A stretch of DNA of 64,000 nt from Oopsacas minuta (taxonomy: Eukaryota > Animalia > Porifera). The stretch covers positions 124,001 to 188,000 of the forward strand of contig JAKMXF010000044.1 of assembly GCA_024704765.1 (NCBI GenBank). The letters run 5' to 3'. A program made the translations under genes and the position numbers. Below are positions 13,780 through 40,259 of this stretch, piece after piece. The notes under the pieces are model-generated. The model was not told where the DNA came from. It made no database searches and was given only the letters and a program-made list of their open reading frames with translations. Each line of letters opens with the position of its first letter. Positions within the stretch are counted from its first letter, which is position 1.

Positions 13780-15868
13780 GGGGGTGCTGCATTAGCTCGA
13801 ATTGTTATGTTATCGATAGCTCGAATTTAGTATGTTGTCGATAGTTCGACTCAGTCTTTAGTATGTCATCGATACCTTCCCCATGTGTCATGCATAATTT
13901 TTTATTCTTCTACTGTTTGTTTATTGAATAAGTATATTGTATTAGTGAGTATGGAAATATTTAATTATTATGATATCAAAAGATTATGTTAGTGAATGGA
14001 AAGTGGATAAATAAGTGTATAACTACTAAGTATAAAAATATGGAATCGACTGATAATTGGAGCACGGCACACCTGACACGTCTGATTTAATTCCTCTATT
14101 CTCTCGCTGCATGTTGCACTACAATTAGCGTGCTTACAAGGTAGGAATAGCCAAGTTATTGTTCGCGGTATCAGACATATAACACAAATATTCTCTACTT
14201 CTGGATTTTCGCTTTCACTGTTTGAAGTGTCTGACTCATCAGTATCAGAGAATTCAATTTCAGTAGAGGTACCACCAATAGTGTTGCTCATTGCATTTAC
14301 ATACTGCCAAGGAGTCAACTCGCCAATTCTGAACTTTTCCTTAATAACCTCGTGTCGTTGATCCTTTAGAACATGCTTTGATTTCCTCGACCTAGAAATG
14401 CTATGGCCTAGTCTCAATCTCCCCATTTCATTATCTATATCTTCTATCATATTCTTAAGAATTTTCAGAAACTTCCATACTCTTGGATGAGGAGTTTTAA
14501 TGATGGATTTTAGCCTTGCGTGATAGCTTTCCGCAGCATTATTGGCAGTAATTTCAGCTTCATAGATAGAAAGCTCCTCTGGATTTATTTGAGTGATCCA
14601 CTTTTTCTTGAAGTATTTACGAAGTTGCTCCAATTTGCCTGATTCTAGATTTGTTAAATGCGGTACTTGGAGGAATGTATAGGTTTGACGAATTAAATTT
14701 ATTGGGAGAAATGGTATTACCATGAGATTTCTTATGAAATTGTCAGTTTCAGGATTACCATGAGAACTCTGATCTAGCCCGAGCTTCTGAGTTTTGGCTC
14801 AGATAGGTTGGGTAAGTGGAACCAGCATCCCTGATTTTTAATGGTGGGGTAAATTTCTTTAAAACACTTTCGCGGTGCTGGTTCCCAGTCAGAAATAGGG
14901 ATTTTCCGTTTGAAATCTGGAATGAGAGAATGGATCTTGGCTATTATTACAGTATAGAGTTTGTGATCTTTTGACGTCATTAACAATGTATGCCTGGGAG
15001 TGCATGTCGATCAATTACCACAAATACTGTCCATAATCGGGAGAATTGGGTTGGCACTGTATAAAATGTCCCATCTGACTGAATTTTGGAAATTTTTGAT
15101 ATGTAATTTTTCATGTGTTGAGAATAAAAGACAACAGCAGTATGGTTATTAGTCTTGACAGTTAATTTGTGGTGAGTCGCAAAAGTAAATTCGGGTAACA
15201 TAACTGAGAATTCTATAGCTGTATGGGGATCTTAGGTTGCAATCTTCTCCTAGAACGGTGCATAAAAGACTCACTCATCTTGAAAGAAATTTCACTTGCA
15301 AACAGACTCGTTCTTATTTCGTTATCGAAAATCTTCCTTAAATTGTCTTGAAGTTTAAGCCTTTTCTTGCTATGGTGTTCAATTCATAAACTCCTGATTT
15401 GTACTCATCATTACCATGGTTATGAATTGAACTGGGATATATCAAATTATTTTCTAACTTTAATTTAGCTGTCCCTTTACACCCGTTTTTGGTAAAACAC
15501 ATCTGAGGTATGTTGTACTTTCTTTTACTTTATATTCAGAATACTTAGACCTATCGGTTGTCGTAAGAATTTTCCATTACTACGCCTATAGCTGTCTGAT
15601 GTGTATTCCATTTTCGAAGATCTAAATAATACAATAATATCAAGAGACCAAAAAGCTTCTTATACCAGTGAAGCAAGCTGTTTGTAATTGCTATGATATG
15701 TGATTTTTCAAAACAAATCTATTCAGCAATTATTTATCATTGACAACAGCTATACAACTGAATGAGTCGAACTATCGACAACATAATCAAAAACTGAATC
15801 GAGCTATCGACAACATACTAAATTCGAGCTATCAACAGCATGACAGTCCGAGCTAATGCATGCGCCCC
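13780..15868 (-). mobile_element. MULE (Mutator) element, 2,089 bp, with ~100-bp subrepeat-containing TIRs and an 8-bp TSD
   Basis: TSD TATAGGGT at 13772-13779 and 15869-15876. The TIRs end GGGG..TGCATTAGCTCG and are built of GAGCTATCGACAACATACTAAATTC units. Confidence 0.92.
13989..15580 (-). pseudogene. FLYWCH-like + MULE transposase + C-terminal C3HC4 RING finger, frameshifted
   Basis: CFTKNGCKGTAKL..HNH; SDGTFYTVPTQF; ISDWEPA..GCWFH (MULE CxxH); ANNAAESYHARLK; acidic linker; RING CVIC..PCKHANCSATC..CQVC (14067-14186). Confidence 0.88.
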
Positions 15869-35670: not shown

Positions 35671-36141
35671 TATATATTAATGAATCAGGAATAATTAAGT
35701 TTCTTGTAACGAAATTAAATTTTGCTAAAATATATTTCATTCGAATCATTTTACCCCATACATTCAATGTCGAGATAAATTTACGTGTTTGTGCGCATTT
35801 GGGTGGGTATAGAAATACTATTCAAAATTTTAAACTCACAATTATGTGCATTGTAAGTTTCGGGGACTGTAGGTCAAGGACAGTGGCGTATCCAGGGTTT
35901 GATGAAAGATTTACGCTGACCTGGAGCTGAAGAATTTTATGTGGCTCCTGTGGCGCCACGTTTGCATGTACAGTATGATAGTGAGAAAGAGTTAATGTGT
36001 GGCCCGCATCACCAGATTATCCAATAGGCACAGTAAGCACTGTGCCTAGGAAATTTTTATTACCTAAGTGAAGTTGAACATGAAGAATATAAAATTATTC
36101 TAATTGTTTTAGAATTTCCATATCAGTATATACCCTTACAG

Positions 36142-38975
36142 CACGGGTCTCTCAGAAAATCATATTGATCGAAAAAACGAGGTCCTTGAGATTTTTCATG
36201 ATTCTTGTGTAGAATTTTGCGTAGAATCCGATTCTGTTGCCAAAAAAATATTTCTCACACAAATTTTTGAGTTATTTTATATTTTTTTGTAAAAAAAAAA
36301 TTTTTTTAGTTCCCATTTTTGTATGTTGTCGGGTTGCTAATTTATCATATTAGAATCATCGTTATCACTCATACATTGAATATAATACATCCATCAGTCA
36401 CATATAGAATAAATTAAGTACTTATAAAATTAACTAAATTAATTTCCTTGACAGCATTTAGTAGGTTTTCGCCGTAATTTTCTAGAGACTCGCTACATTG
36501 ATAATTTCTCCAAACTTTGATGAATCGAGAATGAGCTGATTCAGCTGCCTGCTCTGAAACGGCGCCCAATCCCATACCAACTGGAAGGAATTTGGTGATA
36601 AATGGGATAACATGTCTGCACACTATATGGACTTTTGTTGAACAATTCAGCCCAGTTAATTTGAATGCTTCTTCAAATTGAAATATCGCCAGTTTGTAAT
36701 CACCTTGTATCTTTTGCCCAAAACATGTCCTCACTACCTCTGAAAATCGCTTTAAAGCAATGCTGGATGAGTTGCTAATTGGAAAACCAATCTGCTCAAC
36801 CATCAATGTAATTTTCCGCATTGCATTACCTTCAAATGCGCCTCCATGGTAAGAACTTCGAGATATGTTATTGTGCTTCAGTAATAATTCATGTGTAACT
36901 AACTCTTCTTCAGACATTGTAGCCACGATCGCATTGTACAACTTCTGACCAACCCCTAACAAAAGATGTAACTCGGGAATATTGAACATCTGCATGTAGT
37001 CAACCATCCATACACCAAGAGCCTCCATATCTTCTACACCATCACAGTCAATCGCTTGATTCTTTGAGTCGGAGTTATATTCTTCACACAATTTTTGGTA
37101 CATCTCTGCATGATGTGCTGATGATCTTGATTTGAATTCGACATGATCCAATCCACTTTTAGCATCCCATTCACACGAAATGCATGGGTAACGTCCAAGC
37201 ATAATACCCAGACAGAGAGCAGCGGCTTTGAGATCAAAGGTAAAAGATACGTTGTACTCATGAATAAACTTTTGAATTTCCGGGGCATTCAGTATTATAG
37301 AAAAATTGTAATTATTTTCAGGAGCACTTGATACCCATAAGAAGATTAGATTTCGCACAGAATTTTCCAGTTGTAGACACATGACAAGCTTAGTGAACCC
37401 ACAACCATAATCAAGGCCAAGCTTAAAATTGAACCTGTAAACTGAAGATTCTCCGCTAATGTTGTAGACTTTTTCTATCAGTTTGTCGATGTTGCAACAG
37501 CGTACGACCCAAGTCTTTCTGATATCAGAGGAATACTTCTCTTTGCTCCATTCCAGATCTAATTGGACGCATTCGAATATATCATCACAATATTGTTTCC
37601 GTTCGTCGTAATAGTCCTTCATTGATGGACAGGCCAGGCCAGCATCCCTTATTACTTTGGTTACAGCTTTTAGTTGCTTGTTACTCATTGCTCCGCCAGT
37701 GCATTTTATCTGTGCGATGTCAGAGAAATCCATTTTGGGCATTTTGTGTTGAGGTAACTGGTCCAAATTACCAGGAAGCATATGAATTGGATGGCCTCCC
37801 GATGGTCTAGGTAACGTTATACGCGAGTCCTCACTTGCACTGCGGAATTTTCGTAAGATTTCGGAACATACGACAGGTTCAATAGAACGTTTTCGTGCTA
37901 ACAAAAATTGGCTATTATTTACCAAAGAAGTTTTTGAGCAAGTATGCGGAAATCCGGGACTTATTGTGTTTAAACACTTACTACAAAGGTTAAGAACCTT
38001 TTTGGGAGAGTTGATCGCAGGACGTCCAGGTTTTTCGTGGAGAATTTGCAAAGAAGCACGATTTCTAGGTCCAAATCTCGAACTTTCCATGCACATTACA
38101 CAGGTATTGACTGAACTACACGTATTCAAGCGAGTATTTCGTATAATTGGCCAATTGAATCGAACAGGAATTTCCCTTGAAGTATCATCATGCATTGATC
38201 GATTAACCAAATAGAGCTTGCACGTATTGCACAAAACATTTGGCCGATTATCGTCCATCGGATCGATTGGCTCGAAAAACTTCGAATATTGCTCACCCAA
38301 ATGAGTAGAAATAAGGCTATTGTTTTTAATAGTTATCTTCCCAACTTTAATACAACACCAACGACAAATTTTGTCTTTTGCAGACTCGTGCTTACTCATA
38401 AATACCAACAGTAGAAACAGATATCAGAACAATTATGTATCAGAAAAATTATATAGAAAATGAGTACAAGCATTCTTTAAATAGTTTTTCTATGCAAACA
38501 GATATTCGTTAAACACCTTTAATTACTAATTATCACTGAATGGAAACTACTTAAAAGTATTCAAAGGACACGATTAGGTGATTAATGACGTGCAATCAAA
38601 CTATTGTTACTATTGTTAAACTATTCGAACCTGATACCATACAGAAAAATGAATGACATAATAGAATAGAATAAAACCGCAATACTATTGAAAATTCTAA
38701 GTGCATGCAGATGTAAACAACAATGTCTAAGCATATCATAATAATATCTGATTGCCAATGGTGATGCATCTGCCATCGCTGTCATGATGAGAATCTAAAA
38801 TATTCGAATTGTAAAAAATTATTTTTTTACAAAAAAATAAATTTATCGAAAAATTTGTGTGGGAAATATTTTTTTGACAACAGAATCGGATTCTACGCAA
38901 AATTCTACACAAGAATCATGAAAAATCTCAAGGACCTCGTTTTTTCGATCAATATGATTTTCTGAGAGACCCGTG
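36142..38975 (-). mobile_element. Intact Chapaev-like DNA transposon, 2,834 bp
   Basis: TIRs begin CACGGGTCTCTCAG, are identical over the first 98 bp and have 2 mismatches over ~127 bp. Perfect 4-bp TSD ACAG (36138-36141 and 38976-38979). Single long internal ORF. Confidence 0.9.
36414..38399 (-). CDS. Chapaev-type transposase with a RAG1-like N-terminal Cys-rich region, ~661 aa from the first ATG
   Basis: Uninterrupted ORF. N-terminal CRWC..PNVLCNTC..W..C..CVMC..GRP; CSKC..PHTC; predicted catalytic LDYGCGF / FDLK / SEQAAES; CISC and HIVCRH zinc ligands; PELHLLLG; YHGGAFEGN. Confidence 0.88.
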   Translation of the reverse strand: MSKHESAKDKICRWCCIKVGKITIKNNSLISTHLGEQYSKFFEPIDPMDDNRPNVLCNTCKLYLVNRSMHDDTSREIPVRFNWPIIRNTRLNTCSSVNTCVMCMESSRFGPRNRASLQILHEKPGRPAINSPKKVLNLCSKCLNTISPGFPHTCSKTSLVNNSQFLLARKRSIEPVVCSEILRKFRSASEDSRITLPRPSGGHPIHMLPGNLDQLPQHKMPKMDFSDIAQIKCTGGAMSNKQLKAVTKVIRDAGLACPSMKDYYDERKQYCDDIFECVQLDLEWSKEKYSSDIRKTWVVRCCNIDKLIEKVYNISGESSVYRFNFKLGLDYGCGFTKLVMCLQLENSVRNLIFLWVSSAPENNYNFSIILNAPEIQKFIHEYNVSFTFDLKAAALCLGIMLGRYPCISCEWDAKSGLDHVEFKSRSSAHHAEMYQKLCEEYNSDSKNQAIDCDGVEDMEALGVWMVDYMQMFNIPELHLLLGVGQKLYNAIVATMSEEELVTHELLLKHNNISRSSYHGGAFEGNAMRKITLMVEQIGFPISNSSSIALKRFSEVVRTCFGQKIQGDYKLAIFQFEEAFKLTGLNCSTKVHIVCRHVIPFITKFLPVGMGLGAVSEQAAESAHSRFIKVWRNYQCSESLENYGENLLNAVKEINLVNFIST

Positions 38976-40259
38976 ACAGAGATAATTATATATCACGCAT
39001 AATTATTCCAGTCTGTTTGTTTGTCGATTGTCAAGGAAAGACTTTTTGTAATGCTATTTAGAAACTGAATTTGCAGCTGCAAGAACCGCATGACTATGTA
39101 TTTATCGTACATACCTTTGTGAAGGTTCACTTTTGCTAAATAGATCGTTTATGGTGAAAAGAACTTTCACTCTCTTGCAACAATATACGAATTTTTGATG
39201 ATTTAATTCAGAATATACCATAAACAAATAACCTACTCTTGAAATAATCCTAGTAACATGCTCTCATCAATCCTTTTGGAGAAACAATTACCATGAATCC
39301 TAATATCGAATTTTGAAGTTTCTCATTTGTAAATTTGCAGTTGTTATATTAATATACTCAGGGTCGCTCTTTACTAACGCCCAATTATGAACATTCTATT
39401 AGTATGGTTCCAATCTGTCGTCCCATTTAATTCATTTTCATTTAATGTGCATTTATACATAACTTCGCTAAATTTATAGTTAATGTATTTTGAACGGGAT
39501 CACAGAAATACAAAACTGAATGTATTTAATTCACTTACTTCTCAAAAATCTCATAAAATTGGTTTCCACAGTAATACTAGGATAATAGAATACATTGATC
39601 CAAGAATTTCGTACTTACAATTTGTTTATATGTAACATATTGTTGTTTCTTTTTAAAATATATTGGGAAATACAAAGCGCCGAGCTCAACAAATCATAAT
39701 TTGTTCTATAAGCCAAACTATGACAGCAAGCAAATCGTGCGCAAATTTATCACTAATTGACCAAAAATTGCTACTCCATGGTATCTTAACTAAGGCCTGC
39801 CTTGGGCTTCTCAACACCTATATTCTGCCCTGATGGGGCATTATTGGCTGCGGGTGGAGCTAGGCCGCCACCTCTAATGAAGTCACTGGTCAAGCAGCTG
39901 AAACATGGATATACATAGTCAGCTAAAAATGCTTGAGAATGAAAAAATATAGATTTATTTTGTTCTGCAAACGAATTACCATAATCACATAATTCTTATG
40001 AATACTGATAAATGCCTTTAATTACTGAAGAGCTAGAATATTTGTTAGTATTTTCAGGTTTTTCCATTTTTTGCCGAAGTTTGAGACTTTCGTCAGACTT
40101 ATTATAATTTCATTAAGTAACTATTAATGCATATTTCTAGGTTAGAAATAGTGCAGAATCGTATGCATCCATTGACTTTGTTTAATAGCTGAGTTCAGCT
40201 TTCACCCCTTATGGCAGAATTCACACTGTGCTTTTGTAAGTGTAATGGTGAATGTAAAC

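Follow-up and report, generated by a model that had tools for sequence, protein, structure and literature searches.

The window analysed here, a 64,000-nucleotide (nt) stretch of the genome of the sponge Oopsacas minuta (contig JAKMXF010000044.1, positions 124,001 to 188,000), carries at 36142-38975 a DNA transposon of 2,834 bp, which we assign to the Chapaev group and whose single gene encodes a transposase with RAG1-like modules. Read directly from the window sequence, the element starts CACGGGTCTCTC and ends GAGAGACCCGTG, its left terminus at 36142 being CACGGGTCTC... and its right terminus at 38975 being ...GAGACCCGTG. It is flanked by identical copies of a target site duplication (TSD) of 4 bp, ACAG, at 36138..36141 and 38976..38979. 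The terminal inverted repeats (TIRs), delimited by an inverted-repeat search and by alignment of the ends, have a length of 163 nt and a complementarity of 91%; the left one (36142..36304, plus strand) begins CACGGGT and the right one (38813..38975, minus strand) has the final bases ACCCGTG. They are identical over nt 1-98, with the first mismatch at position 99. Each TIR also contains a direct repeat, GTAGAAT, its two copies offset by 12 bp (positions 68 and 80 of the TIR; window 36209-36227 and its mirror in the right end), which may be a transposase-binding site.

The transposase gene is a single exon on the minus strand (36414..38399) that encodes 661 aa plus a stop and keeps the same frame in eight genomic copies. 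Its open reading frame (ORF) runs uninterrupted from the first ATG at 38399 down to 36417, with the stop at 36414-36416; counted from an upstream TTG, the frame has 664 codons. Apart from ORFs nested within the transposase gene, the ORF list shows a single one of at least 60 aa in the element, and no RAG2-like second ORF. The original prediction, also made from the sequence, had described a perfect ACAG duplication, TIR ends starting CAC and identical over 98 bp, and one unbroken ORF of ~661 aa, and our reading agrees with it on all three. The element is far beyond chance, because a 2.8-kb unit with the same ends is found at 15 distinct loci.

The catalytic core

Residues 220-661 (36417..37742, minus strand, as are all protein features below) form a predicted RAG1/Transib-type catalytic core, as judged by structural alignment and Foldseek. 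Conservation and the family profile were taken from a 66-sequence family alignment, across which D330, G332, E361, D389, K391, C409, L477, H478, G524, E616, E620 and H623 are invariant, while C406, H591 and H596 are retained in 65 of the 66 relatives. The candidate catalytic residues are D330 in LDYG (37410..37412), on the strand formed by residues 324-332; D389 in FDLK (37233..37235); and E620, the second Glu of SEQAAES (36540..36542), on a helix spanning 617-630. Between D389 and E620 lie all three of the C(2)C, LH and H(4)H motifs, namely C406-x2-C409, here CISC (zinc ligands ZnC2; 37173..37184), L477-H478 (36966..36971), and H591-x4-H596 (zinc ligands ZnH2; 36612..36629).

When searched against PDB sequences, the family profile reaches the amphioxus RAG1L (BbRAG1L, 6b40) at E 8.7e-5 and zebrafish RAG1 (3jbw) at E 0.005; HzTransib is not reached by this search at E<=10, and phmmer against the PDB with the single window protein as query returned noise only. 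The register set by the profile pairs DLK of the family with DEK of RAG1 and RAG1L, PCxxC with CTLC, LHLLLG with LHCDIG, GN.CR with GNYAR, K.H....H with LHKTLAH, and the second Glu of SEQAAES with the Glu of NES. The aligned RAG1 residues are those that we take to be D708, C727/C730, H937/H942 and E962 (the last numbered from W956). On this register the counterpart of RAG1 E962 is E620 rather than E616. In the case of D330 the assignment, made without a residue-level alignment to RAG1, follows instead from the fact that the residue is invariant and lies on the first of the RNase H strands.

An AlphaFold2 model of the protein (pLDDT 86, pTM 0.69) was compared with known structures. Foldseek places only RAG1, BbRAGL or HzTransib among its top 49 matches, with E values down to 1.2e-12. 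VIA-align superposes model residues 221-661 on residues 460-1002 of mouse RAG1 (DDBD to CTD) with Z 23.6 and a root-mean-square deviation (rmsd) of 3.8 A over 412 residues, and model residues 220-661 on residues 21-473 of HzTransib with Z 22.8; BbRAGL gives Z 21.1, as compared to 13.9 for the P element and 9.1 for Hermes transposase. In the model, D330 sits on the first RNase H strand, D389 just past the fourth strand and E620 on the long helix that follows, and this predicted placement is the canonical DDE topology. A homodimer prediction for residues 215-661 scored 0.13, 0.87 and 0.12, where the mark was set at 0.32.

The suggestion that LDYG, FDLK and SEQAAES hold the DDE residues is therefore upheld by invariance, profile register and strand position, and the structure prediction called for at the time places the core beside RAG1 and Transib. 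The accompanying proposal of a zinc site formed by CISC and HIVCRH stands as to its location, in register with C727/C730 and H937/H942 of RAG1, but CISC itself turns out to be a private change of the window copy.

The putative N-terminal zinc-binding region

Upstream of the core, residues 1-108 (38076..38399) make up a Chapa or RAG1-NZD-like double zinc finger, recognized by its conserved ligands, a fold match and a published motif. Eight residues here (H4, C12, C15, C57, C60, C94, C100 and C103) are invariant or nearly so in sets of 66 and 56 relatives, giving the pattern H-x7-CxxC ... CxxC ... C-x5-CxxC. A recent preprint on the RAG1 NZD (10.64898/2026.01.24.700457) describes the Chapa/NZD domain as two interdigitated fingers, of which ZFa is ZAD-like, and in type I Chapa domains ZFb takes one N-terminal and three C-terminal ligands. 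The pattern in our protein fits the type I domain, and we infer that ZFa is liganded by C12, C15, C57 and C60, and ZFb by H4 together with C94, C100 and C103. According to the same preprint, the domain is present in Chapaev and absent from Transib, and its function in Chapaev is still without experimental validation.

In a search of the ESM Atlas with a model of residues 1-215, residues 1-108 match a cluster that carries PF12560 (RAG1_imp_bd), with a TM score of 0.63 by target and an rmsd of 3.2 A over 96 residues. Among the 66 relatives, Pfam finds zf-AD in 12 and RAG1_imp_bd in one, weakly. The same model had no significant match in the PDB (best E 1.4), although ZAD domains are among the top rows, and a PF12560 search of the whole genome returned no match, its controls being equally silent.

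No RING model matched any of the 66 relatives, and all that follows residue 108 in this region is a small zinc knuckle, CxxC-x9-HxC, at residues 139-154 (37938..37985), in which conservation is 90% or higher at C139, C142, H152 and C154. An N-terminal Cys-rich domain common to RAG1, as had been proposed, is thus borne out by the conserved ligands and the PF12560 cluster match, and the description of the element as a single-gene system lacking RING and RAG2 holds, there being neither a RING model match nor a RAG2-like ORF.

Copies, age and mobility in the sponge genome

We searched the genome assembly (61.46 Mb, 365 contigs) and found 15 full-length copies with 98-100% identity, all with different flanks and with a mean pairwise divergence of 0.65%, which answers the earlier call for a count of near-identical copies. 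Some are only 1-5 substitutions away from the majority over 2.8 kb. The 661-aa frame is intact in eight of the 15, and stops or frameshifts interrupt it in the other seven. Termini read from 28 loci nearly all take the form CACGGGT...ACCCGTG; in one copy the terminal GTG is altered at a single base.

A survey of TSDs took full-length copies and derivatives together, 19 elements in all. The TSD is a perfect 4 bp in 12 of them, matches at three of four bases in three more and is 5 bp long in one. The duplications (ACAG, GATA, ACTT, CCGA, TCCT, ATGG, GGTG, ATCG, TAAG, CTTT, CCGT and TGCC among them) share no sequence and reveal no target consensus.

Rearranged derivatives occur alongside the full-length copies. 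A 1.67-kb form consists of element nt 1-1109 joined to inverted nt 1-574, so that it has two 'left' ends, and is found at two loci (L018, G000:C326:244692-246364; L019, G000:C99:462279-463952), each with its own perfect TSD (CCGT and TGCC). A 2.31-kb form (L017, on C122) joins nt 1-1534 to inverted nt 1-831 and is flanked by the TSD CTTT. These rearranged derivatives have TSDs of their own at separate sites and were therefore mobilized in trans, and the family moved recently. The family has thus amplified very recently, and its non-autonomous derivatives have been mobilized with it.

Classification

The literature assigns the Chapaev group either to 'CMC' or to the Transib superfamily. Chapaev hallmarks according to Zhang et al. 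(2014, PMC4079192) are a TSD of 3-4 bp and CAC/GTG termini, together with a DDE domain in which, citing Yuan and Wessler (2011), they list the motifs C(2)C, LH and H(4)H. Kapitonov and Koonin (2015, PMC4411706), who include both Chapaev and Chapaev3 in the Transib superfamily, defined the Chapa domain as common to RAG1 and found RING in only some Chapaev subgroups. Their Additional file 5 shows Chapaev-1_HM as HEENRKVCFLCLK ... PCNCL-IC ... KRSDCFSVI, with no RING, and the similar Chapaev-2_HM, -5_HM and -1_AA, all likewise without RING.

Our element has CAC...GTG ends, a 4-bp TSD, the C(2)C, LH and H(4)H motifs, and a Chapa N-terminus, and the consensus from the 66-sequence alignment, HxENRxKVCLxCxxK ... 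CxCxxC ... KxCxxC[FL]SxI, agrees by eye with the N-terminal parts of those four published elements. Because the consensus and the hallmarks match published Chapaev, we place the element in the RING-less subgroup typified by Chapaev-1/2/5_HM and Chapaev-1_AA, as an autonomous and recently amplified DNA transposon, and put the probability of this reading at about 0.88. The original description, Chapaev-like with a RAG1-like transposase, has held for every hallmark that we tested.

Three other readings were tried and set aside. Membership in Chapaev3 was rejected, as there is no TWA 3-bp target duplication between A and T and the 4-bp TSDs are without consensus. Membership among the RAG-like elements (TransibSU or ProtoRAG) was rejected, as there is no RAG2-like gene and no RING after the Chapa domain. 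Ends resembling recombination signal sequences (RSSs), with heptamer, 23-bp spacer and nonamer, were also dropped: the nonamer matches the RSS consensus at five of nine positions by eye, and both termini are identical, so that there is no 12/23 asymmetry.

Weighing the alternatives

That the element is instead a canonical Transib or a RAG-like transposon would account for a core fold about equally close to HzTransib and to RAG1 (Z 22.8 and 23.6) and for ends that start CAC, as Transib ends and RSS heptamers do. Yet canonical Transib elements make a 5-bp TSD, the length seen here in one element as against 4 bp in 12; the N-terminus is Chapa/NZD-like, a domain found in Chapaev and not in Transib (10.64898/2026.01.24.700457), and its motifs agree with those of named Chapaev families; and neither a match to a Pfam RAG1-core model nor a RAG2-like ORF is present. 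We consider this alternative very improbable. More improbable still is a domesticated host gene that derives from a transposase and lies between repeats by chance. The ORF is indeed long and open, and the protein family is widespread, with 5,563 clusters at E<=0.001, but the unit occurs as 15 copies at unrelated loci, with the same TIRs and with TSDs of their own, and the deletion derivatives and the neutral pattern of substitution also speak against a host gene.

Several points nonetheless weigh against our assignment to a recently amplified, autonomous, RING-less Chapaev family. Pfam gives no match to the window protein even at E 10, its RAG1 core models included. The subgroup assignment is by motif-level agreement with the published alignment, and the dimer and the nick-and-hairpin steps of the mechanism proposed below are drawn by analogy from RAG1 and Transib. 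No matching TSD flanks three of the 19 elements surveyed. Six amino-acid differences set the window copy apart from the intact majority, among them W408S in the C(2)C motif, which reads CISC here as compared to CIWC in most intact sister copies; given that residue 408 is aromatic (W, Y or F) in 62 of the 66 relatives, the window copy may not be the family's most active one. Private changes in the intact copies number 22 nonsynonymous to five synonymous, a ratio that is the neutral decay expected after insertion. Finally, empty sites with flanks rejoined at a single ACAG, which the original prediction had proposed to look for, did not turn up: no joint across 36141/38976 was found in any run, although these were searched as contigs only, in which rare alleles, level of expression and strand are invisible. 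Contigs of the source sample span both junctions of the 36142-38975 insertion. Nor did a search for a paralogous empty site find one; the left flank has no second match, and the right flank merely borders on a short repeat.

The element is a well-preserved Chapaev that was probably active recently. We advance more tentatively, at less than even odds, the proposal that the family is still active in the sponge, which would make it a tractable Chapaev: a 661-aa, intronless, partner-free transposase carrying both RAG1-like modules. If so, direct tests would become possible both of the function of the NZD/Chapa domain and of the way in which a core of the RAG1 type fixes its target stagger at 4 bp instead of 5 bp. 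A recent extinction, in which the copies are intact merely from youth, the enzyme of the window copy is crippled and nothing is mobile now, is also possible, if doubtful. It draws on the neutral decay of the copies, on the stops and frameshifts already present in seven of the 15, on the W408S change within a zinc motif, and on the empty site that went unseen in the source sample's contigs. Against it stand the eight uninterrupted ORFs, the copies that lie so few substitutions from the majority and the conserved ends of the element; moreover, contigs are unable to reveal rare empty sites, and neutral decay of single copies is normal in active families.

Relatives and wider distribution

The transposase family, mostly 650-700 aa in length, spans Cnidaria and Porifera by the labels of the ESM Atlas. 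The only names returned by protein searches were a hypothetical protein of Oopsacas minuta and, from a fly, a 'doublesex' protein that is mis-modelled. NCBI 'hypothetical protein LOD99_9244 [Oopsacas minuta]' (P0008) belongs with 96-98% identity to a sister Chapaev family in the same genome that shares ~60% amino-acid and ~67% DNA identity with ours and has at least two open 673-codon frames (G000:C11:302531-304513 and G000:C56:15852-17834). Older, decayed relative families are present in the genome as well. Elsewhere in the window, an ORF at 13989-14723 encodes 244 aa and lies within 13780-15868.

Distant relatives also have CAC termini, CACAGTG in L041 and CACAGTT in L042 and L043. The first of these elements (L041:2084-5412, on a contig of another assembly, ENA ERZ25071281; protein P0003, 59% identical) has inverted ends that are long (~350 bp) and composite, of which the left carries an insertion; its termini are CACAGTG, the canonical RSS heptamer, and CACTGTG, and no clear TSD was seen.

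Runs that carry the labels of three other organisms (X5, X6 and X18) contain internal pieces of the element with 90-100% identity, including pieces of 236 nt and 189 nt without a difference in X5. The unique flanks of the 36142-38975 insertion are not found in these runs. The identical internal pieces could come from close relatives or from recent horizontal spread. Just to the right of the element, at 39011-39356, lies a ~350-bp repeat both ends of which recur at dozens of places in the genome and which looks like a miniature inverted-repeat transposable element. At 38970-39097, a bin that reaches from the element's right end into this repeat, depth is very high in runs from two other organisms.

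Proposed mechanism and significance

In the mechanism that we propose, one intronless gene would produce a 661-aa transposase composed of a Chapa double zinc finger, a short zinc knuckle accompanied by a helical linker, and a core of the RAG1/Transib type that bears the putative D330/D389/E620 triad and a zinc site made up of C406/C409/H591/H596. On the model of RAG1 and HzTransib, a dimer of this protein would bind and pair the two identical CAC-initial ends, nick at the CAC border, release the element with hairpins left on the flanking DNA, and join its 3'-OH ends, with a 4-bp stagger, to a target chosen with little regard to sequence.

RAG1 is the enzyme that cuts antibody genes, and the single enzyme of this element is predicted to have the same zinc-finger head and catalytic body. 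That Chapaev is a relative of RAG1 and Transib with a Chapa domain was, however, already published in 2015 (PMC4411706). Because both the RING-less Chapaev architecture and its link to RAG1 were thus described before, the picture of RAG origins is unchanged; the original expectation that the element would be useful there is sound insofar as the RAG1-like features are real, but its value is incremental. What we add is the extension of well-documented Chapaev elements to a hexactinellid sponge. Because the family is very young and offers eight open 661-aa ORFs, matched ends and mobilized derivatives, it is also a practical place from which to begin transposition assays and structural studies.

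Comparison with known systems

Part of the core coincides with the Pfam family DUF1280 (PF06918), which 15 of the 66 relatives match over residues ~209-345, the start of the RAG1-like core; the window protein itself is unmatched. Among the matching relatives are P0016, P0019 and P0025, of which P0016 alone exceeds the curated cut-off in score. A family of uncharacterized proteins without functional annotation, DUF1280 takes in no more than a part of the core, and on this overlap it is probably a family of Chapaev-transposase fragments.

Compared to RAG1 and BbRAG1L (PDB 6xnx, 4wwx and 6b40), the transposase is predicted to have the same DDBD-to-CTD fold, with Z 21-23.6 over ~410 residues; the alignment takes in the Glu and the second Asp, both sets of zinc ligands (CxxC and HxxxxH), LH and GN, and there is an NZD-like N-terminal finger too. 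Identity to RAG1 is ~13%, the first and second Asp are 59 residues apart as compared to 108 in RAG1, and the element is without RING/ZFA and without a RAG2-like partner gene. Unlike RAG1, it is multi-copy and mobile with a 4-bp TSD, and no Pfam RAG1 model reaches its transposase. HzTransib and canonical Transib (PDB 6pqx) share the core fold, the single-protein transposase and the CAC-initial ends, but differ in a 5-bp TSD and in having no Chapa/NZD domain. Chapaev3 elements such as Garfield and Merrow (PMC4079192) resemble it in having C(2)C, LH and H(4)H, CAC termini and an N-terminus of the Chapa type; they have a TWA target, a 3-bp TSD and a Chapa domain that starts with Cys, whereas our element has a 4-bp TSD and His as its first ligand.

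The RING-less Chapaev-1/2/5_HM of Hydra and Chapaev-1_AA of Aedes carry the same N-terminal signature, H-x7-CxxC ... P..[IF]CxxC ... CxCxxC ... C[FL]SxI, and have in common with our element a single transposase gene, no RING, CAC ends and a short TSD. The third C-terminal ligand of ZFb is displaced in the sponge clade (C94, as against the position of the CxC cysteine in others), and the closest relatives found outside the sponges share only ~25-28% identity. The host in the present case is a hexactinellid sponge, as opposed to Hydra and Aedes.

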